41,685 nucleotides of DNA from Lenisia limosa (Eukaryota; Protista; Breviatea). The notes beneath the pieces are model-generated. The model did not search any database and was not told the DNA's origin. It worked only from the letters and a program-made list of their open reading frames with translations. The stretch lies in contig LPNZ01011587.1 in NCBI GenBank assembly GCA_001655205.1, positions 1 to 41,685 of the forward strand, in the 5' to 3' direction. The position numbers and the translations under genes were made by a program. The first letter of the stretch is position 1; each line of letters opens with the position of its first letter. Below are positions 3,001-39,900 of the stretch, piece after piece.

Positions 3001-6000
3001 AAACAATGAAAATGGACGTTTGCTATTTCATCCAAGCTTGGAATATCATATTTTCGCTAACTGACCTTCAATTTGATCCAATTGGTGTTCCTTTCTCCGA
3101 TCTGATATTCACTCGAAAGCTTCTTGACCATAATTCCTTCTTCTCCCTGATGGGGTGAACATGTACACAAATAAAACGTGACAGTATATATCTAAATTAA
3201 GAAATATAATCAGTTGTTTTGTTGATATAAGTCCAATACTGTTTTCACCCCTATTACTACGAAAACGGCAAATAAAAGGGCTGAATGTTGATTTTGTAAA
3301 TATTTAAATGGTATAAAGCAAACAGGAATGTGCCATTTTGAATGGTGCCTCCACTCACTGCCATACTGGCCTCAGTGAGCCTTGAAATGACCGTCTCCAC
3401 ACTGTCTACTGGGGTCTGTTGTGAGACCTTAAAGCTTAGAGATATTCCTGTCGTTAGTGGTTTTCAAGTTAAATTAAGTCCTTAAATCATAAAAAAGCCA
3501 TTTACATCCCACCTCGATTTTCTTGGAGCTTTCCTTAATTGTTTCCTTCAGAATTCGGTGGCGCTCGGAAAGTGTCTGAAGCGTAATAACTAGACAGGTA
3601 GGCCTCCAAAGTTATGCCACTTTAGATTTCTTACTTTCATACAACCTTAGCAAAATCATTTTAACCAGACAATAACTAAACCAAGAGCCCACTAAGCCAG
3701 TAAGTACGCGGTCATCTTTTTTAATAATGTCAAACACCATGTAAACAAGGCAGTCATCTGGGCTCTCAGATTGCCCATTATCTATATCGTAAGCGTTTTC
3801 ATAATAAATTTTGATTGATGATACGATACAAATCATAAAAGCATACAGACAGCAGGAACAGCGGAACATGGGAGGAAGCGATTCTGACTTGGTGAGTACG
3901 GACACATTTCACCATCGAGAATGCAGCTGTATGGTAAAAGAAAAAGAGTGACAGACAGTGGAAACTGAGAGGAAAACAAAAAACAGAATGTACAGAAATA
4001 TGAGAATATTATAATATTCTTTTCACCAAAATGTACCAGTTTTCCTTTTAAAAAACCAGTCACTAGTGTGACTCAATAGTGATAGTTCCTCCCTCAACAA
4101 GCCAAAAGCATAGCAGCAATAATGAGACTGCCACCCAGTGTTATATGCATATCGAAATAGTATTATGTATTTAAAAAGCCCTTTTCAGACCTGTCAGGAA
4201 CCACAGCCTTCATGATGACACGGTCCATAATGTCCTTGATTCGACTGGTCAAGTCCTCAGCGTTACGGGAGTAGTATCTACACGTTATATGACGACAATG
4301 GAATGCACAGCTATAGTTCAAGCATACCTGATAACAGCGTTTTCTTTGTGAATGAGTACTCGATGACCGTCAAATTTTGTTTCTGTAACATAATTTCCTT
4401 TGGCCATTACCTGTGCCTGTGAGTGGCGATTCCACATGCAACAAACTGGCTATAAATTTATTTATTTATGCTCCTGTATAAAAATGATACATGCCTTAAT
4501 TAAAATTTCTCAATGGATACAGTTAATCTGGCCAGAAACCCAGTTACATTCTGCAGCTCTGTCATTTGAACGCGTTGGGCTAAAAACGGCTTGAATCTCG
4601 AAAACATCACCACAGACTAAAAAGATTAAGAAAAGTACAGTAAATAAGTGTATGGGGAAATAAATAAAAGACAAAAGCTTAAGGTAGTTTAAGCAAACTG
4701 ATCAAACAACTCACATTTTTGTCTATTCTAGCGTTCGGGTCCTTGAGTTCTTCTGCAACCTAAAATGTTAGCTTATAACCAAAATCACATTATTATTTCT
4801 AACGTTGCATAATCCATCATCTGTGATGTATTTTCATGAGAATAAGAAAATTGATGCAATTAAAATAGATAGGGCTCTGTGCAATTAATTGAAAAAATAA
4901 CTACAAAATTTGAAGTGGGATATAGTGAAACCAGAAGCCCTTTTCAGACACTTTAATTTCTAATTTTGAGAATTAAATTCTTCAAAAAATTAATTGCACG
5001 CAGCCTTAACAATTGTTCCCTGACATGTACATTTTTTATTATAATATACTCTGCAATCTATAGCTGTGATATCCAGCAAAATAACCATTGAAATAGAAGA
5101 GTACTAGGTTAATTACAATGCAAAACCATTGCAAAACTCAGCATACCTGGCGAACGGAGTTGCAACGATTGAACAAAGTACTGGCTTGAGGGTGGAATGC
5201 GTTGAGGACTGAAGGGTGACATATATATGACATTCATAATTAAAGGATTTCTGAAGAAGGCTGACGATTCTCAAAAATGGATAATGGGGGGGGGGGGGTG
5301 GAAGCACAAAAAATAACACTTGACCCACTTCTATTGGCACCGCACCCAAGCTTCAAATCTAAAATTATAATGATTACAGTTTGAAGAATTCTTCGCAGCA
5401 AAAACAGTAGTTGACAACCTCACATAATAACTATGCAATTATTATTATCTCCCATCCCACCCTTCAAAAGCAATCTCACAATCCATTTATGCTCTTTGGG
5501 TACTGCGGTTCTCAAGAGGCTGCGGACAAGATCCGTGTTCCCCGAGTCTCTGGCAGGGTTACGGTAATGAATTGGTGGGTAAGCTAAACGCAGGAGTAGC
5601 GATAAATGAAAACGGCATGAATGTCATACTATTCTCTACAATTACGCTGTTCCTGAATTATATTTTACATAATATATGAAACACACATTTCTGGAATGTA
5701 CACATTGCATGCTAAACAAAACAACATGGCAAACCCAGCAGTCTGCTTGAAGCGATCCAATATTTTATTGACGTCTTCCACGGACATTGTGGATTTCTCA
5801 GGGCAAGCCATCTTGACGTTATGTTCCACAACCAAGGACAAATCACCAGCACCCTGTTGATATCAAAATACAACTTTGGGACTGATTATAGAAAAAACCA
5901 ATGATGGTTGGCTGTTGATATCACCGAATATGTGAATCCCATTACTCACCTTAGAGCCGGCGTTTTTCCTCCAGTTGGTGATAGCATAAGCCTTGGCTGA

Positions 6001-6500
6001 CGACTTGGTCAATGCGTTGGCGTAAGCCTTTGCAATAGTCTGCTCCTTCATTCCAAACGCCCCTCCAAACTCCTCCTATAGACTTGAGAAAGCCTTGAGT
6101 TGATATGATATCTACCGTCAGGAAATAACCCAGGGCTTAAGATCAAGCATAATTCCCAACAGTTTGCTCTGGTATGAAGCAATATCAATAGGTCAGCGAA
6201 GCCCCACCTTAGGGAGCAACAGTCTGAGCGCGGGATAAAAGTCGTTTTGTGGGTCTCGCCAGGAGTTGAGGAACGCAGCAACATGCTTTGGGCTGTTTGT
6301 GGGGGTCTAAAATATCAAGAATGGGACATTCACGCTAAAAATAATTGGGACTAGAACTTGTCCAATGTCTCTTATTGATACTAAGTCTGTTGGATAGTTG
6401 GGCTTGTAGGGGTGAAGTTTATCCAACATACCGCTTCAGCAATGCTCTCATATGCTTGAACTAATGTCAAAAACGGTATAGTGGCTGCGTAGGAGGTCAT
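1..6500 (-). CDS. LIG4: DNA ligase IV (NHEJ ATP-dependent ligase), multi-exon (at least 23 exons), 3' end (expected BRCT region) beyond the window start
   Basis: Hand-spliced exons give MTSYAATIPFLTLVQAYESI (ATG at 6500), NDFYPALRLLLPK, GAFGMKEQTIAKAY, HKWIVRLLLK-DLKLG, FKPFLA, motif I YVTETKFDGHR (Lys at 4375-4377) then YYSRN, motif III SCILDGEM, IIIa VYMVFDII, IV GEEGIMVK, V WIKLK-IDYL, OB fold DLDVAVIG-AFQGRG, VGSGLT, KPDVYLNP and motif VI TFRFPRCVAFRFDKSWREC. Order and wording follow LIG4 as I recall it, not LIG1/3. Intron phases were consistent at the junctions checked. Confidence 0.95.
185..308. repeat. 32-bp tandem repeat, about 4 copies, spanning a LIG4 3' splice site
   Basis: Unit agct(t/a)atgaagttctgaaggttgagggaaggg starts at 185, 217, 249 and 281. 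There are no spacers. Confidence 0.95.
1248..2180. mobile_element. Non-autonomous DNA transposon (MITE-like family C), copy 1, in a LIG4 intron
   Basis: About 33-bp inverted repeat aaaaccgcgaacatgattaaaac(t/c)gcgaacaa ... ttgttcgcggttttaatcatgttcgcggtttt. Near-identical to 14878-15696, with TA-rich flanks and an internal N gap. Confidence 0.85.
4870..5008. mobile_element. Short MITE-like element (family B), hAT-like TAGGG terminus, in a LIG4 intron
   Basis: Left end tagggctctgtgcaattaatt matches the reverse complement of the right end (taaggctgcgtgcaattaatt) at 18/21. The TSD is degenerate (5/8). Confidence 0.6.
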
Positions 6501-6880
6501 CCTTGATCAAAACCTAGGAACCTGGAGCTTACTAAGCCATTTTCGTCTTTCTATTTGGATGTAACTTTAGTATATTTTACAGTAAAAGAGGAAATATCTT
6601 CTTGGGCCAACAACAACCTTATATCATGTAGGATCACGTTGATCGTCAGTTATAAGTTCTGGAACCAAAAGCGAGAGAGCCTCTTTCTTGTGCGATAATG
6701 TTTACAGTATGTTATTTTTTTGAATAGATGTTAAAAATAATACAGGAACTGGCCTTCGAAAGACTTCTTCCCTTCCCAATATGTTAGGAGGGCCGCAATT
6801 TGACTGTTTGATGAAAGCCTATATCGCCCATTTTGAGCAACACAACAATCAATAAGTGCCTCCATAACACCGTATCAAAT
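6501..6880. promoter_or_regulatory. Probable bidirectional promoter between LIG4 and the WH2-containing gene
   Basis: Predicted start codons diverge at 6500 (minus) and 6881 (plus), 380 bp apart. No specific element was identified. Confidence 0.4.
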
Positions 6881-9800
6881 ATGGAAAACCTACACCGCCC
6901 AGAAAACACTTCCTTATCTCCCAGATATCCTGTGTTGATGGTGAGTCACTTCACGACTATCTGAGAACGTAAGCGCTTTTGGAGTTAAAATCGAATTTCC
7001 ATGGTGTTTATCAACCGTTGAATAATCTGAATTGAATCTAGTCTCTGTGATTTATCGAATCGAGGGAGGTATATGTGTGAACAATGAAAGAGGTGCCAAA
7101 AAAGAATGAAACGCACGATTTATTAATTGAAGCGTTTCATACAAAACGATTAAAGATCTGCAAGTACATTTTTTGATTAATCAGTCTGCTTCCCTCCATT
7201 AACTCTTCAGATGAGGCCGCGGTCCTACTCTCATGTCCCTCTGGGTATCGCAAGCAGGCTTGATAGCCCATCGGTGAGGATGATATTGAGCTACTCAGCA
7301 TGCTTAAATTGATATTGTGGTTGTGTCATTAATGCAAACAGGATACTTTAAACATGACTATAAAGGATAAATAATTTAATCCACATTCAAAAGTCTGTTA
7401 CCACACAGCCGTTAAGGAAATCAAAACCGTTACCTCCCACGCCAAATCAAACGTTGTCGTCACATTGGTCCCCGTCGCCTCTAAGTCGATCTCCAATGTC
7501 AGTTTCATAAAAGCAAAAGCAATAATTTCATACGAGCAAATAGTTCTAAATATTTCACGAAAACGGTCCTAATTTCATATTCATTAATAACAAGAACGCT
7601 ATTAACATTACACACAGTTCTGAGCCGCCCCAAAGAAGCCTGCCACCAACACCACGAGGAACAGCCGACCTGAGACTCTTGCGACCTCGATCGGCATCTC
7701 AACACTCCCTATCAGGCTCGCAGCATCACAGTGCAAGCAGCTCCCTTCGATCTTCAAATGACCGTTTCCTCTCATCTTCACTTATCCCGCTTGATGAGGA
7801 TAAAGCCACTGTGGGAAGTTTCCTTCCGATAGCTTCCGACACGCTTCCGACAAACAGACCCGCCACAGTTCCGCGTTCACTTTCTATTGAGTCTCTTCGG
7901 TCACGCGACTCTCGAGCCTATGGGGATCCAAGTGATCTTCATGTGGATCCTTCAGGCGCGTTTGTTGATAGAAGGGCTGCATCATCATATTCTCGGAGTA
8001 GCTCCCCCGTGATTAGTGGGGGGCGCCATCCCTCAGAGGGGCATATTTCAGCTTCCCAATATGGCCTGCATTCACAGCCCCACAATCCAAGCCACTCAAG
8101 TCAACAGCCAGGTCATTCTTGCGAGCCCGAGGCCCCTCAGCAACCCACCCCGTTACCGCAACCGCATCCACAGCAACCACAGGCTAACTGTGACCCCCGT
8201 ATGGTAACGTCCAGTCATCATGTCCATCAAGCCACCAGGAATGTAGTCCCTGGAAAATATCAAAACCACCAAATGCCTCCACAACAAGCAGCCAGTACCT
8301 TCGAAAATGCACCGCAAAACATGGCATATTTCCCCCCGCCGCACTACCCTGATGTATCAGCCTACCCCGCTCAATACCACCAATTCAGAGTACCGACCCA
8401 GGTATGACTATTATTCATTTATTGTGAATACTGTTTTTACAAAATTGCATGGCCATTTATCCTATTAGACACAACCTGTTACAGTTTCTCGTTCCAACCC
8501 TTTCTTTACATTCCAATGGATTTCCCCCTGTTTCGTCAAATTCATGAGCTCAGCTGCCTTACACCCCCGGATTCCCCCAATGGGCGCCCGACGCAGCAAG
8601 CCCCTTGGTGTTGACATCCGCATCCGCCCTGTCGGCTCTTGTCGGCTCAGCGGGGGATAAGAACCCAGACAGTACGCAAAGCGAAGTAGCCGAGATCGCA
8701 TCTGGAAGGCAGTCCCAGGTACAGGTACAGGGGGCTAGTGATAGTAATACTGCATCGGTGGAGCCTGTGCCCGTATTGAGTGGTGGAAGCGTGTTTCTAG
8801 GAATTATTATTCAAATGATATGCTCAACTGTTTGAAATCTATCCGGATGTAGGGGCTCGAAAGTAGTTATAAAGTCATGCCAAAATTGCATCATAATGAC
8901 GATTAGTTTTCATTGATCAGAGTGAAGAAAAGAAGACACCAGAGAAGCCTGGTGCTCTTTCACAAGATGAAGAGTTGAATAAACTTGTTAACACGGTGAG
9001 CCTTTTCGTATTATTTCCACGTTGTTTTTGTGTGAGTACATCCTCTTTACTATATTTAGATACAATCCTCCATATCTGATCAGGCGGCGCAGATCAAAGA
9101 TCTCTCAGAACTTCAGGTTGGTATGATATTAATATTGACTATAATGGACTTTGTCCATTTTCACGTATTATCTCAAACTTTGTTTTTGTGATTTTTCTCC
9201 TTTTATTGTTTGGTTATATCGTTATCAGTGTGTGACTGCTGTAGCTGCGAGCGTATCAACAGCAGCAGCATCTCCGCCACAATCTCCAGGGTACTCCCGG
9301 CTTCGACCCTCTGACAAACGTCACACAAGCCGTCCACCCCATACCCGTCAGAGAAAGTGCAGCACCAAATCCTCCTGCAACCATCCAATTGCCGAACAGC
9401 ACTCCAGTCCACCACCAGCCAAGCCAACCCTCTGAAGATCCCAAATTGTTATCCGCGGAAAAAGAGGAAATTGTCCGAGAGTGGCAGAAGATTGAAGCGG
9501 CTCGGATTGAGGTTCAGAGCCAAGCAGCTCTACAGGCACAACAGGAGCATGAGCGTGTACGAGCCTTGCGGAAGGCTGAGAAGCTACGTGATCGTGAAAT
9601 GAGGCGTCAGGAACGGAAGGAGCGTAAGATCAGGAAAGCTGCCAAGGCGGCTGCCCAGGATGAATTAAGAGCTCGTCAGGTTGGGGGGGGGGGGGGNNNN
9701 NNNNNNNNNNNNNNNNNNNNNNNNNNNNNNNNNNNNNNNNNNNNNNNNNNNNNNNNNNNNNNNNNNNNNNNNNNNNNNNNNNNNATTGATATTTTAGGCA

Positions 9801-12800
9801 GTATTTGCTCAGGAACAGGGAGTTCTCATGCGAAACCCAGAGGTTTGTTTTTATCTGTTAAGTCAATGAGGATAGGCAAATCTCTTTCAGACGAGCTAGT
9901 ATAGTATCACTAGGGCTTCACTACGGTCCGAAAAAGACCGTCAAAATATCGATATTTATCGAAGTTATCGAGAAATTCAGTCTTTTTTGGGACCGTAGAA
10001 GGCTTAAGTATCACAGAAAAATATATGAATACAGAACACTATGTGGATGGATAAATGTGTCCGACTATTGGGAGCAGTTAACGCATCATCAGAGTGCGCA
10101 GACGGAAATTGATCCCTTCACACCAGCTGATGCTGCTTTGCCGCCTGATCAAGCCTACAGGTTAGCTCATGCTAGATTTTTGTTTCTTCTCTCCTAAAAG
10201 GGTTTAATTGTGTGTCCCCTCACGACATTAGGAACCAACAGTACAGTGCAAACATGACCTTCCACACGCAGCCATCCCTGCCAGCTGCCCCAGCCCCTAT
10301 GAATCCCCAACTTCAGCAGTATATGATGAACCAGGGCCACTATCCTCCTGAAATGCAGCAACAGATCTACCAGGTTTGAAGTTATTTTTTATGCAAGGTA
10401 ATCATAAAATTATGATTCCTAATGGTCAACTCTATATGACAGCTTCAGAAAATGCAGCAAGACGCCCAACAACAGAGCTGGAACCCGCAATTCATGACTC
10501 AAAGTGGAATGGTGCCTCCCAATGTGCCCCAAAAGCCTCAGTACAATATGATTGTTCCCAACTCGGAGCCCTTGAACTGGACAATGCCAATGAATGACGA
10601 CTTTATGGAAGTTTGAAGGGAGTTACAATATTATGATTTTACTATAATTATTACTGTCTTAGTTTCTTTTTCGTATTGCTTTTGTTATTATTATTATTAT
10701 CTTTTGCAACTGCTTGGGGAAAACACAGCATGTCGTTTCCAGTTCATCTTATATTACATACAATTCTGTGAGATGTACAAATCAGCTTTGTTGAGTATGT
10801 GTTGCTTTCAATACCTGTTACACTCTTTCTGAACTCTCAGGTTGAAATCGAAGAAACTCTTCCCAGACAGAATACCCAGGTCAGCTCTTTTATTAGAGGG
10901 TATATAAATTAACACTCTTTTCTGGTGTGCTACTTGAAAATTTGACCGTTGATAATCTTGCAGGAGAGGCCTCTTTACCAGTACCCACGGTCAACCTTCA
11001 CCGAAAGAGTTGAGGAATTTGCTATGAAAGTGAAACGGTCTCCGCCTCAAAAGCAAACAAGGACCAAGTCGAAGGTATGCGTATTACAACTTGCATCGGA
11101 GGGGTTTTTTTGGGGGTTTACACACCCCAAATTTAATTAAGTCTGTTTGTCTCATTTCCTCAGCCGAAGCCGGACGCCTCGATGTTGAGCGGTCCCCCTG
11201 AAGACCTTTTACCATCAGCACGAAAGCACCACCCGAAGGCTGAGGTATACTCGTTTGATTGAATGTAAAAACGCATCTCTATGGGTAATTTTTATCTCCA
11301 CTTTCCATAGTAACGCGTCCAGACCAGCTCGCCACCACCTCCATCATTCGGCACGATTTCACCTCAGTCAAGCTCGTCAACACTTCAAGCTTTTGAAATG
11401 ACACCGCCCGTATTCTCTCCTGAGCAGCAGAAGAACATTGAGGAACTCAGACGGAGACGGTCATCCATCTCGTCCACGCACCCGCTCAACATGCCGTCGG
11501 CAAGTTCTGTTCAGCCCGAACCGAAGCGCGTAACTCGAATGGCGGACATCCAGCCACTTCCTTATGACTTCGCAAGGCCATCCTATGCTAATACAATTCC
11601 GGGAACTTCGTACTGTGGTAACACCATTTCATATAGTCCCCAACACACAACAATTCCTCCTCAAGGCGCACAGAGTATTGCCCCGGGTGACTTGGCTGAA
11701 ATGATTCGCAAAGCCGTGACTGATAGTTCCGACCAGGTTCCAACAACTGCCGATCTGGAGCGGCACGTCAAAGGACTCCTCACCACCATCCAGCGAATGA
11801 CTGACAGACACCGATCTCGGTGAGTGGGGTGTTAACACTATATTACGTGATGGATTTTGATCGAATGATCTTTTAAATAATAACCTTGTTATAATAAGGC
11901 CAGCATTATTGAAATTGGTTAGTGCAGATATTTTTTTTGTGTGTCTTTTGTGAATTCTATTTGCCAACTACTTTCTTTCAAACAACCTGCTTTTGATTCC
12001 TCACGAAAAGGTCACTGACGAACACGATTGAAGAAGCCATTCAACGATATGGCAAAATTGGTTCCGGAACAGGGATGATTGCTGATTCCCTTGCAAGATC
12101 CATTACCAATTTTGCGGGCCTTGCTGACCCCACGTTCCAGCCCCAATACAGGTCAGCGAGCATCTATGTATGTATTCTGTGGTCCATTTGAATTTTTCCA
12201 ATTGTAAACATCTCTCTTTTTTGTTTTCTATCTTCTTTTTTGTTGGTTTTAATGTCACCATTTTTCATTTCGAACACAGTTTATTTCAAACAAACTGCTT
12301 TCTTACATCAGCATCTGGTCTGAGCAGGATATTCAGTACTTTTTATTAACACTGCTAAGTGTCATTTTCCCTTTTCTCCTGAGTTTTAAACAGTGTTTAG
12401 GTTTAAACAGGTTGGAAATATAAGGAAAATAGAAGCCAATTGTAGACTGTAGCAAGGCTAAATAATAAATATTCCCCCAGTAAAAAGCACGCAAATGAAG
12501 AATCCAAGGAAGGAGCTACTTGGGATGGAGTGTTCCAGACATAAAAGCCCGAACATTTGCCCTCCAAAGCAACATGATTATGTAAAAACACACATGAATA
12601 CTCCTACGATTCTGAACGAGGACTTCATTCCCGTGACGGGCTGAACAAGAAGCGCTTTATCGTCAATTGGCGTGGTCACTAACGTACTCCAAAGTCGCAA
12701 CATGATAAAATCTGTTGACATTAGTCATTCCCAAAGCAATGAGGAGGTTTTTTCCATAGCAATGAGGAGGTGGTATTGTTGAGCAAGTGATTCAGATCAA

Positions 12801-15800
12801 ACCTTCTTTTTCCAAATGAAAAGTCACAGAAATAACGAGGAATGTCCAAACGGGTTTTCAGAAAAGATCTCAAAGAGCCTCACCCTAATTGGAAGCCTAG
12901 AGACATCATCCCTCACACCAGGCCAAGAGGCAGTCTGGAACTGTGTCACCTTCAAAGTTTTTGAACTGAACTGTGTTCTTGAGAATGGATTCTTAACCGA
13001 TCTCTTTGCTTTTGACAGTTTTTTTTTTTCAGTAACAATATAACTATCGTCTTTTTTGACTTTCTTTTTCTCTATCTTTTTCAGTGGTTGAGTTTCTTTT
13101 TTTAACAAATAATAATGATTGAATACAGTGAAAGGATGACAGACCCAAGTCGGTCACACTCAACCAGAGAGCAAAAGCCGCGTTATGAATCCCCTCGCCC
13201 TCAACAGGCGTCACAGCGTTCCTACGAATCCCCCCGTCCAGTCGAATTCAGAGTAAGAGGCCATTATATTTGTATTGTAAGTTTTGACTTTTGACTTTCA
13301 GCCCAAAATACGACCACTACTTTGCTCTTTGACACATGACCGCTCACCATCACAGGCGTCAAGAGAGACCATTGGGCCAACCCCTCCGTTGGACTTCTCT
13401 CAACTGCAGAATACAGTGGGCTACCTGCACTCCTCCTCCAACTGTTGAATGCAGATGGCAAAATCTTGGATTTAGCAAAAAAACGACTTTTTGATCTCGT
13501 TCAACAAATTATACTACTAATATACACCCCTCATACACACAGCCGTCAAGAGAGAGTCTTCAGAGCGCAGCAATGTCTAATAGAAGGTATGAAGTGCGTC
13601 TTTTCACTTCACTTGGATTTTTTTAGCATGTTTGCCATACCTCCTTTTTCATATTTATTTTATCGTTTCGATTTACGATATTTATAATATTTACGATAAT
13701 TACTATACAATATTTACGATATTAGGCCTCGCCCGCTGGTCCCTCAAGGTGGAGAGGTGTGGACGGACCCCTCATCGGAAACACTCAACTCTGGCCGCGG
13801 CACACCGAGAGACCAGGCTCGTGCGGCGGCCTTGGCTTCGGGAGGTAAGTAGTATTGTTAAAATACAGGAGTGTTCTCTCAAAGAAGTCAGGAGGATTAT
13901 TGATAGTTGACAATATTGACGTTGACAGCAACACGGCCTCACGAAGGCACTTCCGTGATGTTTGGTGGTGACTCTTCAGATTCGTCTTCGTCCAATAGCG
14001 AAGAGCTCGATAGATTGTGGGTGATTTCAGCGACTTCTTTATCAGGTTCATAAAACCACAGAACTTTGGATTTGGGTAATCATTAGGGCTTCACTTCGGT
14101 TCGAAAAAAGACTGAATTTATCGTTTAATCTTTGAAAACTATCTATATTTTGCCAGTCTTTTTCGAACCGAAGTGAAGCCCTTGGAATCATACTCTAATT
14201 CAAATTCGAATAAAACTCTTTTCATCGATTAATTGGCATGATTATATTTTTTATTCCTCCCTCTTGGACCAGCCCAAGCCCTGAAATTTCTATTCAGCCA
14301 TCCACTCCGACCGGGCAAGATACCTCCCGGTTTGTAGATTGTTTTCAATATACAACCGTCTCTCAAATTGTGTAACATTTTTGGTGAAAACCAGTTTTCA
14401 GTGATATTTAACCGAAGACCACCAAGTCCCAAAACTAATATTTTTAGGAGCCATGCTTTCTCAGACAAACGACCAAACCACCTGACAAGTAAGCATCTAC
14501 AAGTATTTTTTGAATCATTTAGCTAATTAGACAATTTGGCGGTATACATCTCAAAACGTGTAATTCATCCCCCCCCCCCNNNNNNNNNNNNNNNNNNNNN
14601 NNNNNNNNNNNNNNNNNNNNNNNNNNNNNNNNNNNNNNNNNNNNNNNNNNNNNNNNNNNNNNNNNNNNNNNNNNNNNNNNNNNNNCCCTCCATCGTCAGC
14701 TACACAAACAACATCACCCACGCGGTTGACGAGCTTGTTGACGAAGCCATTGGAGAGGATGACTTACTCAACATGTCCCTGGATGTATGCCAAATGTTAT
14801 GGACTGTTTAATAACTATTTATATATACTATATCATATGCATATAGTATTTAGTACATATACTATGTAACATATATAGGTTGGTGGTAAAACCGCGAACA
14901 TGATTAAAACCGCGAACAAGCCAAAAATCGACATAAATCGCTTCAANNNNNNNNNNNNNNNNNNNNNNNNNNNNNNNNNNNNNNNNNNNNNNNNNNNNNN
15001 NNNNNNNNNNNNNNNNNNNNNNNNNNNNNNNNNNNNNNNNNNNNNNNNNNNNNNNNNNNNNNNNNNNNNNNNNNNNNNNNNNNNNNNNNNNNNNNNNNNN
15101 NNNNNNNNNNNNNNNNNNNNNNNNNNNNNNNNNNNNNNNNNNNNNNNNNNNNNNNNNNNNNNNNNNNNNNNNNNNNNNNNNNNNNNNNNNNNNNNNNNNN
15201 NNNNNNNNNNNNNNNNNNNNNNNNNNNNNNNNNNNNNNNNNNNNNNNNNNNNNNNNNNNNNNNNNNNNNNNNNNNNNNNNNNNNNNNNNNGCATCTTCTA
15301 TCATATTTTCGCCCATTTATGGGAAATTTACGCTCTTTTTTGCCCTATTTGTCTCGTATTCTCTACTTAAATGCCTCTAGGTTACTTAAGAGTGGAAAAA
15401 AAATCAAATCTGATGGTGCAAGAACGTCTTCACTTTATCGCAGGGACAATTCTAGGCCATAATCAGTGTTTTTAATGTATTTCGCATGAAAAATTGAAGT
15501 ACCATGAAGGTGGTATTTTGCATGTATGTTGATACCCCTGCCTATTCTTCTGAACAAAACCCTGTATAAAGGAGTGTTTCGGGCGATAATTTGAAAAAAT
15601 GCGAAAGAGGCGTAAATAAGGAGCGTATTGACTCAAAATTTGAAAGAAAAGCCTCCTTTTTGTTCGCGGTTTTAATCATGTTCGCGGTTTTACACTATAA
15701 TACTATATGCAATTCCCCATCAACGTAATGATGATATTTTAACTGCCCCCTCACTATCAATTTCTGTTTTGAATTTCCTAATGCTCTTGTACACCTTGAG

Positions 15801-17918
15801 CTTCTCAAAAGTGACCATTTTTCTTTTCTTTACGATACGATAATATAATTTGAAATACGCCTCTTTACACTTAAGGAAAAGCGAAAGGCCAAAAAACAGT
15901 GGAAGGGTGCCGTTTCAAGGATTATTGACTCCATGCGCAAGACCAACTCTGTGGACCCTGTGAGCAATGCTGAATTTTTTTTGGCAGGAATATTGTTCTT
16001 TATTTGAACACAAAACTCTGTAATTGCATTTCAAAAGACCATCGATGGAGAGCTACACTGATCACTTCAAAATCATATGTTTTGTCACACTTTAGGCCAT
16101 TTTGAAGTCTGCTAAGGCTCAGAAAGGAGCCGTTATGCGTCTGCTTCAGGACATTCGGAGAGGCAAGGATCTGCGAACAACTGGAAGTGGTTGGAGGGCT
16201 GTAGTCATCTTTAAACTGTGATGAGTAATACTGAAATATAATGACCTGGAAGTTCAGGGGACAGAATTGGAGAGTGAGAAGACTATTCTTTTGATTTGAC
16301 TTTGAGCCTAACCCATCATAGAACTGGAGAAACAGACCAACCCCATGGACCTTCTGCTGTTCACAATCCAACGAGGCCGTGAGCTGAGGAAAGTAGACAT
16401 GGACGAAGTGGAGAATAACAAAGTACGGGGGGGCATGTTGCTTGTACTTTGAGCTAAGACAGTTTTTTTTTGTGTGAGTCTTTGGATGAGTTGGGCGTCT
16501 TCTTAAGAATTTTTGTTAATCATGTGTTAGAAATACGCCGAAGACACGGCTGTACTTAGGGTGGTCATCCAGTATATATGATGATATAATATATAATATA
16601 TGCATATAGGTACATGTATATTATATTTCTTTTTGATTTGCGCCTGACCTCATGACCCCATGAAAAAAAAAAAAAAAAAAAAAANNNNNNNNNNNNNNNN
16701 NNNNNNNNNNNNNNNNNNNNNNNNNNNNNNNNNNNNNNNNNNNNNNNNNNNNNNNNNNNNNNNNNNNNNCTCTACGCTGGAGAACATTCTCCTGTCAGCT
16801 ATGGAGGCGAGAAAGTGCGATGGGTTACTGGCTTCCCATCCTCTGGAAAAAGACCAGAAACAACTAATTCAACACGTGCTATTACTATCAAGTTATATAA
16901 CGGAATAGAATAGAGGCTCAGCGTTATAGTTTCCATCTATTGTAACGCTTCCTTTTGGTACAACGCAAATCTGAATATCCTAATCAAGGTTGATATTTTT
17001 ATGACTTGTAAAGAACTTTGATTTCCCTATTACTATCATCATCATAGATTATTAACCGCTTTAGATCATGCCTTACCCAGGATGATTCGGATAATGACTC
17101 AGTTCCCCCTGAGGACCTGGATGAATGGTTTGTGGACCATAGAGACCAATAATACCATAGAGACAACGATAATACCATAGAGACAACGATAATACCATAC
17201 ATACTAGTTATTATATTATATGAAGAATTCTTAGACAGGGACTACAATGATAGAATTTTTCACAGAAACACATCTATACAACACGCTCCCTCAGGGCTAT
17301 CATTCAATCATTGACCTCGCAGGTACGAAGAGGACGAAATGCCCTCGTACGCTCCAAGCCCCGTGTCCACACCACCCCCTCCAGATGGCACCAAAGGCTT
17401 TAATGATGGTGGGGGCGATGGGATATGATGCCACTTTTTTTGCATTATTTCTGAATTGAGTCCAACATTTCAGATCTTGACGTGGCACTAAACCAGCTTT
17501 CAACACCAACGTAAGAAATATTAAATAGCTAAGAACTTTAAAAATGAATGCTATTATTATGTTGTATTCTGACTTGTTTGCTTTGCATACCCAACTCAAT
17601 TTACCTCATCCAGCCCCACACCTCCGCCACCCCTGGACCTTCTCCCACCACCGCCTCCGGCATCCACCCTGCCCATGTCATTTTCAGGCCCTCTCCCCGC
17701 CCCNNNNNNNNNNNNNNNNNNNNNNNNNNNNNNNNNNNNNNNNNNNNNNNNNNNNNNNNNNNNNNNNNNNNNNNNNNNNNNNNNNNNNNNNNNNNNNNNN
17801 NNNNNNNNNNNNNNNNNNNNNNNNNNNNNNNNNNNNNNNNNNNNNNNNNNNNNNNNNNNNNNNNNNNNNACCGTCTGAATTTGTCAAAAACAAATCCAAA
17901 AAAATACTATTGAGCTGA
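6881..17918 (+). CDS. Large low-complexity S/P/Q-rich protein with a coiled coil, polyproline tracts and a WH2-WH2-C-A module; WASP-family (JMY/WHAMM-like) actin nucleation-promoting factor candidate
   Basis: Exon chain from MENLHRPENT (6881) includes 7617-8400, the coiled coil at about 9460-9680 (EEIVREWQKIEAAR...ELRARQ), 11323-11820 and 12011-12152. Further exons: 16096-16189 (AVMRLLQDIRRGKDLRTT), 16322-16422 (PMDLLLFTIQRGRELRKV), 16770-16814 (STLENILLSAMEARK), 17065-17127 (SCLTQDDSDNDSVPPEDLDEW), 17323-17408, about 17474-17510 and 17613-17703 (PTPPPPLDLLPPPPPAS). Phases agree at most junctions checked, but N gaps interrupt the chain. It could be two genes split at about 10610-10840, and the 3' end is uncertain. 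Confidence 0.7.
9911..10006. mobile_element. hAT-type mini-MITE (family A), copy 1
   Basis: TIR tagggcttcactacggtccgaaaaagac. Perfect 8-bp TSD agtatcac at 9903-9910 and 10007-10014. Confidence 0.9.
14084..14183. mobile_element. hAT-type mini-MITE (family A), copy 2
   Basis: About 29-bp TIR agggcttcacttcggttcgaaaaa(a)gactg. 8-bp TSD gtaatcat / ggaatcat (7/8). Confidence 0.9.
14878..15696. mobile_element. Non-autonomous DNA transposon (MITE-like family C), copy 2, intronic
   Basis: Same termini, orientation and internal sequence as 1248-2180, for example catcttctatcatattttcgcccatttatgggaaatttacgctc. Internal N gap. Confidence 0.85.
17137..17199. repeat. 20-bp tandem repeat, about 3 copies, in the intron after the acidic exon
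   Basis: Unit aataccatagagacaacgat at 17151 and 17171, a partial copy at 17191 and a degenerate copy from 17137. Confidence 0.85.
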
Positions 17919-18159
17919 CGTCATATTCGGGGGGAGGGTTGGAAAATTTCCAAGGATTTGGGAAACAAAACGGGAATATTTACAGACTGGAAATATTCTG
18001 TGATGGTGTTTGATGAAACATCTAGTAAAATTTAACGCCCTCAAACAGTTGAGCTACAGGCCTGAGGGTTTTCTGAAGATACATAATAACGGTTGGCACA
18101 CCCCATAGGAGACGTCTTTGAGAGACCTTGAGTGATTAGATAAACACGGTTATATTTAC

Positions 18160-18251
18160 TAGGGCTTCACTTTGGTTCGAAAAACCCTAAAATATCGATT
18201 CGAGGATTTACCGAAAATTTCGGTCTTTTTTCGAACCGAAGTGAAGCCATA
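18160..18251. mobile_element. hAT-type mini-MITE (family A), copy 3, between convergent genes
   Basis: tagggcttcactttggttcgaaaaa ... tttttcgaaccgaagtgaagccata. Flanks atatttac / attattac (6/8). Confidence 0.85.
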
Positions 18252-18306
18252 ATTATTACACCTGCATATGACGAAAAGAAAACACTCTCACTCTCTATGA
18301 GTGAAT

Positions 18307-20685
18307 TTACACGCACTGCGTGGTGCTGTACGATGTTGAATCCACCATACCAAGGTAAAACTGGCAGTAATTGGCAGCTTGGTTGTAGTACGAGCCATTG
18401 CACATTGCTGGTGAAGTGGCAGACGCCCGTAATCGGTCAAGCTGGTGGTCAGGGTAGAAAGATAGAATTACGAGAGTGATATTGATTTTCTACTCATGTC
18501 AAAGTGTGGTCAAATTATGATAAACTCCCCAAATAGTATGACACAACAATCTAAACAATAAATAGTGTCATCAAGATCGCCAAAAAAAAAACGAAACAAC
18601 TGTACAGCACCAAAAGAAGTGGAGAATGACAATTCAAGTATTATTACATGATTCATTGGAGCGTGAATAATGACCCCCCCCCCTACTCCGATTCCAATTT
18701 TCCCATGAATCCACGTAACCGGGTCGTTGCTAGTACGTAATTTCAAGGATAATAGGGCATTCAAGATCAACAAAGTGCCAAAAATGTTAATACTATTGTA
18801 TGCAACGGGGAGGGGGGGGNNNNNNNNNNNNNNNNNNNNNNNNNNNNNNNNNNNNNNNNNNNNNNNNNNNNNNNNNNNNNNCATTTTCAATGGAACCACC
18901 GAACACGACTAAATATCGTTAATCACTTGAAGAGTTTAAAACAGAGCTTCCTTAAAATATGACCGTATGATGCACTTAGGATAAAGGTGGTTGTCTTAAA
19001 AAGTTTGCATTGCGGAATAATTCTCAGGGCTCATTAAAAAAAACTGATCTTAGTATTTCCATGCGGTATGAACAACATACCACTCCGTCTGTGGTATTCT
19101 GAAGGTTCACAAGAACCTCCCCGAACGGCGTGGTGTCACCCTTGGTCTGGTCCATGGGGTATTCAGTGGCTACAGCGGATAAGACTGTTCCAGGGGACCA
19201 GGGTTGAGAGAACTATGTCGAATCAGATCATACAAGTATTGCATTATATTCCACAGTATTGGATATTCCTGCCATCTTACCTCCTAAAAACCCGATAGGG
19301 TTTACTATGGGGGTAGTGTAGAAGTATTCTGGAATATAGAGGCCAGCTATGGAGTTAATACAATAAACGAGCTTCAGTACTGTGAAGAAATCTAAAACCC
19401 AACCGCCCCACCTGTATCTGAGGTGTAGCGGGTAGTCCAAAACTCAGTGGGAGGATCGGGTGAGTGGTAAGCATTCAATCCAAAAAACCTAAATATTAGC
19501 AAAACAAAAGTTGAGAATCGAACATTCTTTCAGCATCCCCTAACTTGAGATAACCCTTTGAATTGCGATAAATGCACTTTCCAACAACATCCTAAAACAA
19601 TATTAATTTTCTAGTAGTACATTAGCATATCATCATCTACGAATAAAATATGTTCAATGAAAGGAGCTGAAAGAAAAAATATTAGACGAAGGTTACGTGA
19701 AATTATCAAAATACACTTGATTAACCCTTCAAAAAGCAACATATGAGAACCAAAAGGATGATATTTGAATAGCTACAATGATGTGTACATAATGTGGTTT
19801 CCCCCACCTTTCCATCAATATGCAGTGTCACTTCACCCTCCGGCAGGCCTCTTTCCATGGCTTTCGTGCAGGTGGCGGGAATGTCTAGAATTTGATAAAC
19901 ACACGGATTTCTTGGCAGAAATATATTCTATTTCACAATGGACCGCATGTTTCGATTGTTATTACCAAAATTGTTTGTTCACAACGGCTACCCGTGCGTA
20001 CTAACAAGCTCATAAAGTTTCACCAGTTCTTCGCTGCCAAAGGTCTAGAAGAATGAAGAACAAGACATCTACGCCTCTAATATGATTCAGCATACGTGGG
20101 TGGCACCGTTTGAAGTGAACGACAGGGAGCTATTGCCGACGTTCAGGCCTCCTTCGACGTCAAGACCAGAATCAACAGTCAAGTGACCGCCGATATTGGC
20201 ATTGTTGGCAACAGAAAGGCGATTAACTTCAACCCCTTCGGCCCTGTTGTGGTGAGAGGTATGATTATGTTTTGACACCACTTCCACTGTGGTTAAACTA
20301 ACTTTGCTCCGCACTCTTTACAACAATACAATAATTCGCCCATTCATATCAACATATTAACCCACACTTCTGTGAATAAGTACTTCCCAGACTTACTTAA
20401 TTTCACCAGTTGGCTGGATAATGCTGAAAAGTGAGAGTGGGGGACTTGGCTTGAATAATCCAGACACTATGCCAACAATTCGTTTTGGCAATGAACAATG
20501 AGAACACTTTGGCAATGAACAATGATAACAAACCATATATCTCAGTGGAAGCGAGGAGGATTATATTCTCCTGGTCTTAAAAATGCAGCCCAAAAGCCCC
20601 TCCCCTCATACAATGCATTTGATGAATATATTAGCAGTAAAGCTATAAAGAATAAGCCTAGGAGGCCTGGAGAACTTCCTAACAT
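18307..20685 (-). CDS. Secreted protein of unknown function with 6-residue beta-strand repeats (tail-fibre / triple beta-helix-like) and a Cys-containing C-terminal region
   Basis: Exons 20685-20612 (MLGSSPGLLGLFFIALLLIYSSNA, signal-peptide-like), 20423-20397 and 20243-20096 (AEGVEVNRLSVANNANIGGHLTVDSGLDVEGGLNVG) have exactly matching phases. Further exons give TFGSEELVKLYELV, NIPATCTKAMERGLPEGEVTLHIDGK, FWTTRYTSDT, AGLYIPEYFYTTP and, after an N gap, NDPVTWIHGKIGIG-LDRLRASATSPAMCNGSYYNQAANYCQFYLGMVDSTSYSTTQCV with the stop at 18307-18309. Confidence 0.75.
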
Positions 20686-33955: not shown

Positions 33956-36900
33956 ATGAATGGTACACATTCGCAAAATGGACAATCAGTTAAGTCGCAT
34001 TTAGCCTCATGTAAGTTGTATTCATATTCACGTAATTAAAGACACCTTCTTTGCTCCTTTTTAGCACAGTTACATCTTGACATTGTAGTGTCTGAACGGA
34101 TTACGGCCTTCAAAGCGTTGACAGAGTCAAGAAAGACAGGTTTGTAACGTCTAATATCATTGCTTCCTCCTTTCCAACCCCGCAGAACATGTATACAGCA
34201 AGACTATTGACTTAATACGTCATATACAATCTAAATGCCGAAATTACTCTTTGCCCAGGAAAGTCAGGCTACTCGCCTCGATCCTCTCAACCAGCTCCTC
34301 CACCGCCAGCCTCCCAGCAGACTTACTCTGATGTGGTGCCAATGTCAACGAGCGATATCTTGGAGAGGCTAGCAAGGGAGCGAACTGCGAAAGGTTTGTG
34401 GCGAATGGTGTGACGAGATCTTACTATTGCATTTTTAACTGCCGTCATCAGTTTCTATTTGTTAAACCATTGATTCCTTGTGTAATTTTTTAAACTTCTC
34501 TTTTTTTGAAGTATTTAATTATTTACCCCTTAGCTCAACCTTCTCCAAGTGACATCATAATACTGCCATCTTTGCATGGTGAGGGATCTGTTAATTTATT
34601 GTTTTGGGTCTGTCTGTGATACTGGGGTTTGCATTGTTTCAACCTTGATGGAGGCACAATGACCAGTGCAAGAGATGTTTATTGATTTTGAGAGTCACAT
34701 CATATGTGTGTAATATTTGTCATGGTTTGAGTCATTGTTTCCCTTTTACATCGCGAGTTGGGCTTTATTATTAATTGTTGGTGAAATCTCTTCATTTTCT
34801 TTTTGATATGCATTGAGTTTACGGTGTAGACACTTCGCGCTCTGAGTCATCTCCACAAAACCCTCTCCCGCACCCATCCCAGCAAAACCACACCCCTCAA
34901 ATTGCCCACCACAGCCCGCAGATGGATGATGATGGCCGTTTGGAGGCTGAGTGCTTGTCCAATAGCCTTGGTAGGCAACACTGTGTTATTTACGTTGGAC
35001 GACAAAATATGATATGATTTTCTTAATAATATATTGCTGCGTCTTCTGTAATTCATCCAGTCTTTTTCCATTATATCATATGATATATTACTCTGCTTTT
35101 CATCTTTAGTTTTCATTGGCTCACAAATACCAGGCACTAGAGAGTCCCTCATGAGCCAGTCAGGGCCACTAATGCTCGATGTTGAAGGGGTCAATCTCTT
35201 GAAAAATGTAGGCTATCCTTTACACTTCTTCTGTAATGTCGTTTTTTCCAAATGTATCTTCAAAGTTGTCAAAACTCTAACATCATATCAAAATTAAAAT
35301 GCTGTTTTCCTTGAAAAAGAATGTTCCAATTTTTACTCCATGAAAATTTTGATTTGGAACTTAAAGAAATGATTCATGTTTATAATCTTAACTTAAGAAT
35401 ACTCATCTATAATCGTTCACAGCTTATTCATTTTTTTTGCAGCGTATTCAGGCGGTGGAAGCGCAAATGGATCAGGAGCGATCGGCCCGCAAATTGGCCG
35501 AAGATGACGGTTTGTGATATTTTTATAGGGTTTTCTAAAAATGGATGAAAGAGACCCGGCTGTTTTCTTGAAAGACAAACTATCCATGATTCTAGAAGTT
35601 GTGATTTTGCATCAAAATGAACAACATTCTTGCTTATTCGCCTTATTCCGCAGCCTCAAAAGCTTTGGAGGTGGTGACAGCTGCTGAGAATGAACTCGTG
35701 AAATGGAGGGCAAATTCAGCAGACCTTGAGAAGATTACAATGGAAAAGGTTGGGTATTTCTATTTGAATTGAGGACAGGCACATGCCGAGTGAATTTCTG
35801 GAAGTCCTCTCCCAATTTTTCTTTCACACTTCAAAAAATCATTCATTTTTCATAACATATTCACGTACGCTAGAGTTGGGATGCCACTGACCTGGGCTTT
35901 GTTTGTTTAGTTGTTATCAACCCTCGTGTGTTGTGCCAACAGAGTTGATTTTGAGCATTATTTGTCCCCCCCCCCCTCTAGGACGAGAGACTGCAACAGC
36001 ATGTCACTCATCTGGAGGCAGCCTTGCGGAAACTGAGTCAGACTGAAGCCGAACGAGCAAGTCTTGAGAAGAGAGTCGAGGCCATGGCTGATGTGGGAGG
36101 TGGCTGTTTCCGCTTACAAAACCACCTTATTCCCGATCCAGAGTATTAGATTTTTTTTTTGTTTCATTGATTCCATTTTTTTATCACATCACCCTCCAGT
36201 CCAACATGACTTCCAACGAGTCATTTAATGCCGAGATTGAGACGCTGAAGAACAAAATCAGTTCTCGCGACTCGGACCTTGACAGATACAGTCATCGAAT
36301 TAAAGTTGGAGCCTGGGATGAAGACAACTTCTTACTTCCTATAATTGTATAATAACTATTCTCTCAAGTGCTAAAGTCTGTAAAATTATTACATGGTCTT
36401 TTTGACTTGCTGGATCTGTGCACTTCTTCAAAACTAAACACCACTTTTTCGAATACTTTTTGATTGATAATGATGTCCAGGTTTTCTAGTTTAGTGAATC
36501 AATGCTACCGGTGTATCATCTTCAATATTACTTATTCTCCAGGAGCTGGAATCCGAGTCCGAGGCCCTTCGAGTAGTTCGTGATAAAGCCCTCGTGGAAA
36601 ATGATGGCTTTATGAAGGAGATCCGGGTTCTTAAAGACTCACAAAAGTCGGAAATTCGAGCGTTGGAAGAGAGTCATAGTGGCGAAACAAGGGTTGGTGT
36701 GGGAATCTTCTAAATGTTTAGGTGCCCATAATACTGTCCCTGCAAACTTTGATTCCGACTTAACGTACAAGGTCTTACAAGCTCGAGTGGAAGCTCGCGA
36801 CTCAGCTGAAAGGGACCTCCAAGCTCAAATTGCTCAATTAGAAAGTGGGAGAAGGAGTTTGCCAAAATGACCAGGAATAACCCGAACCCAGAGACTGTAC

Positions 36901-39900
36901 AAGTAATACATACTAAATCAGAAACATCGTTTTCCCAATCTAATGCTAAAATATTTCCCAGTTGGTGTAGTGAGCAGTGATGACTTTCCTGTTGAATCCA
37001 AAAACGATTATGAATCCTTGAGTCACTTCAATAATATATCCGATCATTTTCCCCTTGTAGTGTGTCATTTCGGACAGTTGGCTCACTATTGATAAATTTG
37101 CCTTTTGCATGCCTTTTTTGGACTCTTAGTAATCCAATATTTGTGACCATTCAGGTGAACTGGATCGCAGTCGACGAGTGGCTAAAGATGCATCGAGTAT
37201 GAGCAAAAATGAGACGGAGAAGCTAAGGGTAAGTACTGCAAAATATGAAGATATTTGGATGATTGTAAGCGTATTTCATGACACAATGGAGTTTACGATT
37301 CAATCTGCCTCCTTTCAAAGTTCAAATTAACATGTTTCTGCGCTAATATTTCCAGTCTTCCCTTGAGATGAAGGACCAAGAAATCGACCGACTTTCCTCG
37401 GAGCTGCAAGCGTCAAGAAAAGCGTATTCAGAAGCTCAAGATAATGCTGCTGCAACACTGAGGTTGGACAGTTAACTTCCATTTTGCTTAATAAAAAAAC
37501 CCAACATAATCTCTTACTGGGGCTTGCTCAGTGTAAGTAATATGAAAGGGATTTATAGATCCCAAGCAAGGGAAGGAACAAACACAAACAATATTCACAC
37601 GTCTCACTCACCAAGGAACACGCGAGTTGAGCTAATGAACGAACGTCAAGCCGAATCCCAAGCCAACCATCGGAGGGTCTCGGAACTCGAGGAGGAAAGT
37701 GCTGCCACCCGGAAGGCCCACCACATCGTTGTTATGGACCTTGATAGAGCCCAGGTACTATGGGGTTGTGTATTTCACAGTTTCGCCTTTTACCGAAAGA
37801 AAATGCAGGAGGAACACTCTGAATATTTCTTATAGCTCTTACCCAATAACCCCCTCCCCTCCCACACACACAGATCGAGTCAGACGTTCTCAAAAGGGAG
37901 GTGGAGTCCCTTAGAAGTCAGGTGGCCGGCGTAGCCTCCGAGAAACAGCGGCTCATTGCCGAGGATAGAAGATTGATTGTTGGGGGGGTTGCTGACTTGT
38001 ACACACTCTCAAGGAAGATACATTCTCATATTATAAAGATACTAGCTTTGTTCATCACCATATTAGGAAGACGATCGCCACCGTAAGGAGCTGGCAGATG
38101 CGGAAATTAAAACAATCCGAGACCATGCCGATAGAATCAAAAGAGATGTGAGTTGAGTTTGTATTCATAGCTTATTACAAAGTAATGAAAACAAGATCAG
38201 GGATTTGTTTGTTTTGAATCATCGTCGATCCTCTAATGACAATTAGGCTGAAGACAAGGTTCAGGATTTGTTGCGAAAGAACAAGGATATTGAGTCTGAT
38301 AAACGTACTGCTTTGGACAACAACCAACAGCTTGAAACAGAGGTATGTGAAGAGCATCACATGCAAAGGATCATAATCATTTGTTTACACCATAATCGCC
38401 TTGTCGTTTTTCTTACTCTAGCCCACAGGCATTAATACTACATTCTGGATTCATTTGAACGGAAATGAGTAATATAGTCTGTGCCTAACTTGTCACAGAT
38501 TCGACATGTTCGTTCCAAACTTGACGAGGCTGATCTGGAGATCTCAAGGCTCAACAAAAGAGTGAGGAGAGGGTGACGCACCCATTTCACATAGTGTTCT
38601 AACCCTCAATCCTCGTCATAGATAGCACATATCATCTCTGTAGCTAACATTGGAAAGTAGTCGTAGAATGTATTTAGTCTTTTTTATATATACTTAATCT
38701 GGATCGGCTTCTTCCCATTTACCCTGCCAGGCTGAAGAATGGGAAGTCCATGCGTCGGAAGTGGCTAATGCTGTGCGGCAAATCGAAGACGACGTCATGA
38801 GGTTGGGGGTGCCCCCACTACTATTTTGAGACCAGCTCTGTGTCGGAATAGTGCGTAACATATGCAATTTCCTTACCAAGGCGTATATGTCACTTTTTAC
38901 TGACATTGTTTTCTTCTTTTTTTTTGTCTCATTCCGACTTTGAAGATCTCGAGACGCTAACAGCGAGATTGAGAAAAACCTCACGGAAGAAAAGGCGAAA
39001 AACGAAAGTCTGTGGAAATACCTTGGTCTAATTTATAACAGCATGTCTGTCGTAGTTATTAATAGATTTCGTTAAAGTGTTGCTAATTTTGGTAACACGT
39101 GATGTATCTCGTCTTATGTCTTCGATTTATCCTTTTCAGAGCTCAGTCAGCTTCTTTTGGAGGCCGAATCTGAGCTGAGGGCTAAAACACAGGATGCTTC
39201 GGTTGGGGGGGGGGGGGCAAAAATNNNNNNNNNNNNNNNNNNNNNNNNNNNNNNNNNNNNNNNNNNNNNNNNNNNNNNNNNNNNNNNNNNNNNNNNNNNN
39301 NNNNNNNNNNNNAATGAACGTTATACTCTGCGCATAGTCCAACTGTTTTCACTTTGCTCCAATTGACCCCCTACCCCATAGACCCTTGTCTCCGATCGGG
39401 ATAAAATGACGGCCAACTTCACGCAGGCACAAGACAAAATTTCGGAAGTGGGAGGGGTAAACAATAGTTTTAATAATTGGATTTGTTGCCTGATCCAGCT
39501 CAACTTACAACAGATTATACATATATATATATCTATGCAGTGACTAGGATAAGCCTTAACCGATTTTTCTGGAAAATCACATAGCAAATCGGTCAAAACT
39601 TATCCGGNNNNNNNNNNNNNNNNNNNNNNNNNNNNNNNNNNNNNNNNNNNNNNNNNNNNNNNNNNNNNNNNNNNNNNNNNNNNNNNNNNNNNNNNNNNNN
39701 NNNNNNNNNNNNNNNNNNNNNNNNNNNNNNNNNNNNNNNNNNNNNNNNNNNNNNNNNNNNNNNNNNNNNNNNGTTCTTAGTTCTTAACACACACAGTTCA
39801 AATTGTTACATTTGGCTAAATAGGCGTTGTTTCCTGTGGTAGAGCCCACTTGCAATCTTAGTATTAATGTCATTATTAGTTTACTGCAAACCTACTCCCT

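Follow-up and report, generated by a model that had tools for sequence, protein, structure and literature searches.

Does the plus-strand gene that runs from about position 6881 into an assembly gap at 17704-17869 of a Lenisia limosa contig encode a module for actin nucleation, and what kind of protein would carry it? The contig is LPNZ01011587.1 of assembly GCA_001655205.1, and the stretch that we analysed (positions 1 to 41,685 of the forward strand, 41,685 nt in all) is called the window below. An earlier note, made from the sequence, had read a set of short exons between 15876 and 17127 as two WH2 motifs, a connector (C) and an acidic (A) segment, placed in a giant low-complexity protein with no WASP-family N-terminus. 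Here, we describe the exons and motifs of this candidate WH2-connector-acidic (WCA) module, and then weigh what they may mean against the rest of the protein and against known WCA carriers. Based on these analyses, we estimate a probability of roughly one half that the protein is a lineage-specific class-I nucleation-promoting factor (NPF) with a WCA-type module.

A candidate WCA-type module

The window has about 37% G+C, short exons and numerous small assembly gaps. By reading the sequence and checking all borders and phases with a script, we obtained a phase-consistent model of 26 exons on the plus strand, beginning at the ATG at 6881, with AG/GT borders throughout and no stop codons. The modelled protein has about 1,300 residues (12% P, 12% S and 8% Q), so "giant" overstates its size. 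The exons that matter for the module lie at its right end, all on the plus strand:

15876-15959, +, exon A: phase 0 to 0; basic stretch and helix KGAVSRIIDSMRK
16096-16186, +, exon B: phase 0 to 1; first clear WH2-like motif, LLQDIRRGKDLRTT
16322-16422, +, exon C: phase 1 to 0; second WH2-like motif, PMDLLLFTIQRGRELRKV
16770-16814, +, visible part of exon D: putative connector (C) helix; ends in phase 2 at the donor AA|GT, with the frame open towards the gap
17065-17127, +, exon E: AG/GT borders, phase 2 to 2; putative connector end and acidic motif, DDSDNDSVPPEDLDE
17323-17408, +, exon F: acidic YEEDE, after which a proline-rich tail begins
17474-17510, +, micro-exon of 37 nt, placed by means of its sequence and the RNA depth table
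17614-17703, +, and on into the gap, exon G: proline-rich tail, with the stop inside the gap 17704-17869

The six peptides on which the earlier reading was built were all found in plus-strand frames at the places given for them: QWKGAVSRIIDSMRK at 15897-15941, MRLLQDIRRGKDLRTT at 16135-16182, PMDLLLFTIQRGRELRKV at 16342-16395, STLENILLSAMEARK at 16771-16815, QDDSDNDSVPPEDLDEW at 17078-17128 and YEEDE at 17324-17338. Every border of the short exons is AG/GT, and the border/phase script reproduced the agreement of phases at each junction that can be checked. A Lys codon is completed over the D-E junction, and the Trp codon of the acidic motif is split TG|G over the E-F junction.

The two WH2-like motifs are the best supported parts of the candidate module. 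In all six frames of the window, we scanned for a relaxed WH2 pattern (two hydrophobics, any two residues, I/L, K/R/Q, a linker of 3-5, then L, K/R, K/R/T and V/T/A). Exons B and C gave the only stop-free matches, where 0.03 would be expected per shuffled window; one further match in the window contains a stop codon. By this measure, the two WH2-like motifs are not chance occurrences. Comparison with solved structures points the same way. Searched with phmmer against all PDB sequences, exon B had a single match, the Spire WH2 triple repeat (E=0.0019), while exon C matched the Spire WH2 (0.014), the tandem WH2 of N-WASP (0.058) and one designed repeat protein. A profile of both motifs matched Spire (2e-5), the INF2 WH2/DAD peptide (0.02), N-WASP (0.17) and WIP (1.1). 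It also matched designed repeat proteins, which add up their scores from many repeats, and, with E near 1, two short natural peptides that are unrelated. Among natural chains of solved structure, WH2 peptides (Spire, INF2, N-WASP and WIP) are thus what the two motifs match best. In the ESM Atlas, exon B had no usable match, and the top named match of exon C was a WHAMM-like WH2 cluster (score 0.82), which we treat as a lead only. The second motif begins with PMD..L and looks like that of WHAMM and JMY, as the earlier note had suggested.

A third WH2 may precede these two. The helix of exon A and the LKSA with which exon B begins may together represent a degenerate WH2 with a long linker, in which three of the ten pattern positions are violated when compared by eye with the published rule (PMC3298513). 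Neither the PDB search nor the Pfam search with exon A returned a match.

Read across exons D and E, the putative connector has the form L-x3-L-x3-M-x2-RK-x2-L. By the published general rule, a C domain has three large hydrophobics with a spacing of three, then a K/R doublet and at the end another hydrophobic (PMC3298513), and the sequence across D/E fits this rule. Within three residues of the connector end begins a D/S/E-rich sequence with a Trp, DDSDNDSVPPEDLDEW, which is followed by YEEDE. Across the six frames of the window, exon E gives the only match to the pattern [DE]x[DE][DE]W, compared with 0.23 expected. Altogether, the candidate module would consist of two WH2 motifs, with the possible degenerate third before them, an amphipathic connector ending in Arg-Lys, and an acidic stretch with Trp.

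If the module works as its order of motifs suggests, each WH2 motif would hold one actin monomer, and the connector and acidic-Trp segment would dock on the Arp2/3 complex; it is from this loading of actin and docking on Arp2/3 that a class-I nucleation-promoting role would follow. The 74-residue tail with its LPPPP site could bring in profilin-actin or EVH1/SH3 partners. Short linear motifs would take the place of a folded domain in recruitment and control. Candidates for this are the SH3 ligands of PLPPTP type close to the N-terminus, a charged helix, another acidic-Trp motif that precedes the WH2 motifs, and the proline-rich tail. That the protein binds actin and activates Arp2/3, and that the tail acts in this way, we infer from the motifs.

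RNA contigs, assembly gaps and the proline-rich tail

Our RNA and DNA evidence comes from the contigs of the only two public runs in which this DNA occurs, one of polyA RNA and one of DNA, both from the same study. A 261-nt RNA contig carries 57 nt of exon A, the whole of exon B and the whole of exon C, with both introns spliced out, and extends 9 nt past the donor of exon C. A second RNA contig, of 271 nt, joins exon F (17323-17408), the micro-exon (17474-17510) and exon G (17614-17703). It includes 7-8 letters upstream of the F acceptor, and at its other end it runs 50 nt into the gap 17704-17869, where it reads 'GCCCCCGTTTTAAGGG' and reaches an in-frame TAA. Further upstream, another RNA contig covers 13171-13252 plus 60, 42 and 26 nt of the next three exons, which supports the exons between 13129 and 13844. 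The gene is therefore real, spliced and expressed from the plus strand. The D-E and E-F joins are supported by splice signals and phase. The joining of the exons proposed in the earlier note is thus borne out by RNA contigs for A-B-C and for F, the micro-exon and G, but not for D and E, which are uncovered.

The 271-nt contig also shows where the protein ends. After the Trp of the acidic motif comes YEEDE and then a proline-rich tail with LLPPPPP (one LPPPP site) that ends in PPPF, making 74 residues to the TAA. The module had been taken to lie at the C-terminus; the contig that joins F, the micro-exon and G instead places this tail after it. Read-through of an unspliced exon E would end the protein 8 residues past the Trp, and no such RNA was found among the contigs.

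Four assembly gaps all border homopolymer or C-rich runs: G15 at 9697-9784, C10 at 14580-14685, A25 at 16685-16769 and CCCCGCCCC at 17704-17869. An independent DNA contig gives the true size of two of them, 45 nt for 14580-14685 and 133 nt for 17704-17869. Since these differ from the numbers of Ns in the assembly, the N counts are unfit for following reading frames. The gap 16685-16769 separates exon C from what is visible of exon D. On its left side, the DNA contig stops at 16653, ahead of the A25 run; on its right side, the DNA contig extends 62 nt to the left of 16770. Exon D and its acceptor start within this gap, because 16770 is a C and completes a codon. As for the gap at 14580-14685, the polyproline that had been supposed to lie behind it is unproven; with its 45 nt, the gap may be intronic or code for about 15 residues.

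A disordered carrier, its counterparts and competing explanations

We looked in the modelled exons for the N-terminal domains behind which known WASP-family proteins carry their WCA region. The searches were made exon by exon and are thus less sensitive than one with the joined protein would be. With Pfam, neither the modelled exons, all of which were scanned, nor several alternative open stretches returned a family above noise, and we disregarded the sub-threshold matches (AIP3, Selenoprotein_S, Ribosomal_S5_C, partial_CstF, SUZ-C and zf-C2H2_16) as weak. In the modelled exons, we found neither WH1 (WASP) nor CRIB/GBD (WASP, WAWH), and no exon had a Pfam match to WHD, WAHD1, WMD or IMD (WAVE/SCAR, WASH, WHAMM/JMY, WAML). 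A CRIB pattern with up to three substitutions allowed was likewise absent from the plus frames of 6500-18000.

The left neighbour sets a limit on what could have been missed. The DNA to the left of about 6500 is filled by a gene for an ATP-dependent DNA ligase, which is on the minus strand and thus oriented head to head with the WH2 gene. It contains a KFDG-containing motif, and the Pfam family DNA_ligase_A_M (adenylation domain) matches it twice on the minus strand, at 4321-4449 (profile positions 17-44) and at 3060-3191 (profile positions 176-204). Based on the order of these matches, the ligase gene runs leftwards and its N-terminal exons reach up to about 6500. Because the start ATG at 6881 adjoins the ligase gene, there is no room for a WH1, WHD, WAHD or WMD. 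The earlier statement that no WASP-family N-terminal domain is present therefore stands, as does its description of the upstream part as S/P/Q-rich with one coiled coil: the protein has an S/P-rich start, a Q-rich stretch and a single charged helix of about 75 residues. The protein is almost wholly disordered and without a folded targeting domain.

To our knowledge, all known WCA carriers (WASP, WAVE, WASH, WHAMM/JMY, WHIMP, WAWH and WAML) have a folded N-terminal domain that sets the place and time of Arp2/3 action. The present protein resembles N-WASP and other WASP-family proteins in its two tandem WH2-like motifs, in a putative connector with hydrophobics spaced by three and a basic pair, and in its acidic-Trp run. 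It differs from N-WASP and WASP in having no WH1, no CRIB/GBD and no clear proline-rich region before the module, in the silence of Pfam WH2, and in the proline-rich tail that follows the module where those proteins end. As in WHAMM and JMY, there are tandem WH2-like motifs, the second beginning PMD..L, and a charged helical region upstream. However, it has no WMD or JMY N-terminal domain, and its helix of about 75 residues contrasts with their long coiled coil. We considered whether it is a WHAMM/JMY orthologue and rejected this, because the exons gave no WMD and the searches no relatives. The Listeria protein ActA and the yeast protein Pan1 are also similar in layout, with short Arp2/3-activating motifs in a disordered protein and, after these motifs, proline-rich repeats that bring in EVH1, SH3 or profilin partners. 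In ActA the order of motifs is A-W-C and there is a membrane anchor, while Pan1 has EH domains; both are unrelated to the present protein in sequence.

Closer in spirit are WAWH and WAML, lineage-specific WCA proteins of amoebae and Apusozoa (PMC3298513), which like the present candidate are protist WCA proteins without a classical N-terminal domain. WAWH has a GBD, and WAML, which is restricted to Entamoeba, has an IMD plus a WAID (PMC3298513), whereas GBD, IMD and WAID were not detected here. The long S/P-rich body led us to consider WAML itself, which we rejected because WAML is Entamoeba-restricted and an IMD would be needed. WAWH and WAML show that protists invent WCA carriers; such carriers are thus already known, and it is the present form that is new. 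In the broad sense, the WASP family is defined by its WCA domain (PMC7112243), and if that domain alone is taken as the definition, the protein, judged by its motifs, is a candidate for a new subfamily. We advance more tentatively, and think it rather doubtful, that the protein founds a class of lineage-specific Arp2/3 activators in which a WCA module sits on a wholly disordered, motif-driven scaffold, with a proline-rich region that recruits profilin/EVH1 after the module and not before it.

Several results weigh against a class-I NPF. Pfam WH2 (PF02205) gave no match even at E<=10, and the strict published WH2 pattern (PMC3298513) has no match in the window: motif 1 has Thr where LKKV has its second K/R (and, by the formula of the rule and not its text, a deviating Gln at helix position three), while motif 2 fails twice, since Phe-Thr occupies the two helix positions that should be small/polar. 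Taken alone, the C pattern has little specificity, with 25 matches in the window against 33 expected, and since it is so common, its weight comes only from its position. PDB searches with the connector stretch and with the acidic stretch returned no matches. Thus, of the WH2-WH2-C-A module first proposed, the two WH2-like motifs, the connector rule and the acidic-Trp run held up, while Pfam WH2, the strict pattern and PDB matches for C and A did not. In known WASP-family members, only a few residues separate the Trp from the C-terminus (PMC7112243); here, the 74-residue tail makes the module internal. At the gap 16685-16769, no DNA or RNA contig bridges the two sides, and an exact-match scan of Joint Genome Institute (JGI) metagenome contigs with a 44-nt piece of exon D, aimed at closing the gap, gave no matches, so that the C-D junction is hidden, and RNA depth is zero at exons D and E in the single RNA run. 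Searches for relatives were empty as well: HMMER with the 165-aa exon at 11323-11819 found none among 1.84 billion representative proteins, and a word-indexed search with a 52-aa open stretch around exon A gave no candidate. Because the orthologue searches were empty, conservation gives no sign of constraint.

Some of these points would fit a different protein, a tandem-WH2 binder of actin monomers or a nucleator that acts without Arp2/3 (compare Cobl, Spire and JMY in its second activity), in which the resemblance to a connector and acidic segment is incidental in acidic low-complexity sequence. Database support is confined to the WH2 motifs, of which two or three stand in tandem, separated by short linkers; the C pattern has little specificity, no matches were found for the connector and acidic pieces, and the Trp is not near the C-terminus. 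On the other hand, right after the last WH2 come the C pattern with its RK pair and closing Leu and then the acidic-Trp run, in canonical order and spacing, and we estimate from the window-wide rate that a C-pattern match would fall by chance in a 30-residue span about 1% of the time. We consider this explanation unlikely. A Pan1/Eps15-type scaffold for endocytosis or adhesion, which we think quite unlikely, would read the same motifs as a set of binding sites: acidic-Trp and DLL motifs for adaptor or clathrin appendages, PxxP sites for SH3 domains, and WH2 motifs as a link to actin. It would account for the two acidic-Trp motifs (in 13929-14020 and 17065-17127), the DDLL and LDLL motifs, the PLPPTP sites, the charged helix, the long disordered Q/S/P-rich body and the proline-rich C-terminus, and the overall layout is reminiscent of yeast Pan1. 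However, the Pfam scans of the exons found no EH or other endocytic domain, and motifs as short as these are common in disordered proteins. A scaffold of this kind would also be compatible with NPF activity, as Pan1 is itself an NPF.

Finally, the module might be an artefact of assembly or gene modelling, with a misjoin at the gap 16685-16769 that puts the WH2 exons and the connector/acidic exons in different genes, or with D and E not being exons at all. The unbridged gap and the zero depth of D and E in one RNA run are what such an artefact would leave. Against it, the RNA contig continues for 9 nt after the donor of exon C, which shows C spliced to a further exon; the exon to which F is joined on its upstream side ends in a base that would fit exon E; and D, E and F share AG/GT borders and mutually consistent phases. 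The end of one gene and the start of another between C and D is implausible because the two exons are only about 350 nt apart, and missing RNA cover is expected because the RNA run is tiny (46 Mb of contigs). Altogether, we regard an artefact as very improbable.

If a class-I NPF is indeed encoded and functional, a WCA module on a purely disordered scaffold with a proline-rich part behind it would mean that the module can be deployed by linear motifs alone, and the protein would add a data point on how the control of actin nucleation diversified among animal and fungal relatives. If the motifs are inactive, they would serve as a warning that WCA-like strings arise in acidic, low-complexity proteins.

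Upstream exons, repeats and downstream sequence

The remaining exons of the model, all on the plus strand, are as follows:

6881-6940 (ATG), 7211-7273, 7409-7497 and 7618-8401, +: GT-AG, phases consistent, stop-free
8554-8790, 9245-9679, 10242-10373, 10443-10610 and 10964-11074, +: phase 0 throughout, AG/GT
11323-11819 (165 aa) and 12011-12151, +: mostly disordered, three isolated helices
13129-13252, 13356-13415, 13543-13586, 13726-13844 and 13929-14020, +: phases consistent, part RNA-covered
14448-14488 and 14700-14784, +: phases fit, RNA cover zero; the latter with the acidic amphipathic stretch DELVDEAIGEDDLL, just before exon A

The left part of the gene (6881 to 8401) is a model without RNA cover. 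It is disordered and S/P-rich from the start and has two PLPPTP-type PxxP sites, KPLPPTP and SLPPTPR. Most junctions of the model are in phase 0, so exons may have been skipped or added. In exon 9245-9679, a Q-rich stretch is followed by the single charged E/R/K helix of about 75 residues that corresponds to the one coiled coil. A single-sequence AlphaFold2 model of the 165-aa exon has a predicted TM-score (pTM) of 0.22, with helices only at residues 33-49, 121-135 and 142-164 and no globular fold. Exon 13929-14020 ends in the second serine/acidic-Trp run, SNSEELDRLW, about 130 modelled residues upstream of the WH2 motifs; judged by its sequence, it could be a second binding site for Arp2/3 or for an adaptor. 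For the two exons before exon A there is an alternative, a single exon from 14531 through the poly-C gap, and phases fit both versions.

Two repeat families occur in and around the gene. A very high-copy short repeat (open reading frame peptide ASLRFEKRL) lies at 14080-14200, at 18100-18260 and near 41122, where DNA contig depth is 2,000-52,000 compared with about 30 elsewhere. It has many joints on opposite strands and is probably an element like a miniature inverted-repeat transposable element (MITE) inside introns. The second family (open reading frame peptide MIKTANK, DNA depth 2,000-5,800) occupies part of the long intron before exon A (14880-15660) and 1190-2160 near the ligase gene, and RNA contigs also match it.

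Just beyond the gene, a 543-nt RNA contig matches the window in two blocks at about 18047-18441. It has long unmatched ends, and canonical intron borders were not found; it may be a neighbouring transcript or derived from a repeat. Further downstream, at 35600-41400 on the plus strand, short open stretches rich in heptad-like E/L/R/Q sequence suggest a gene for a long coiled-coil protein.

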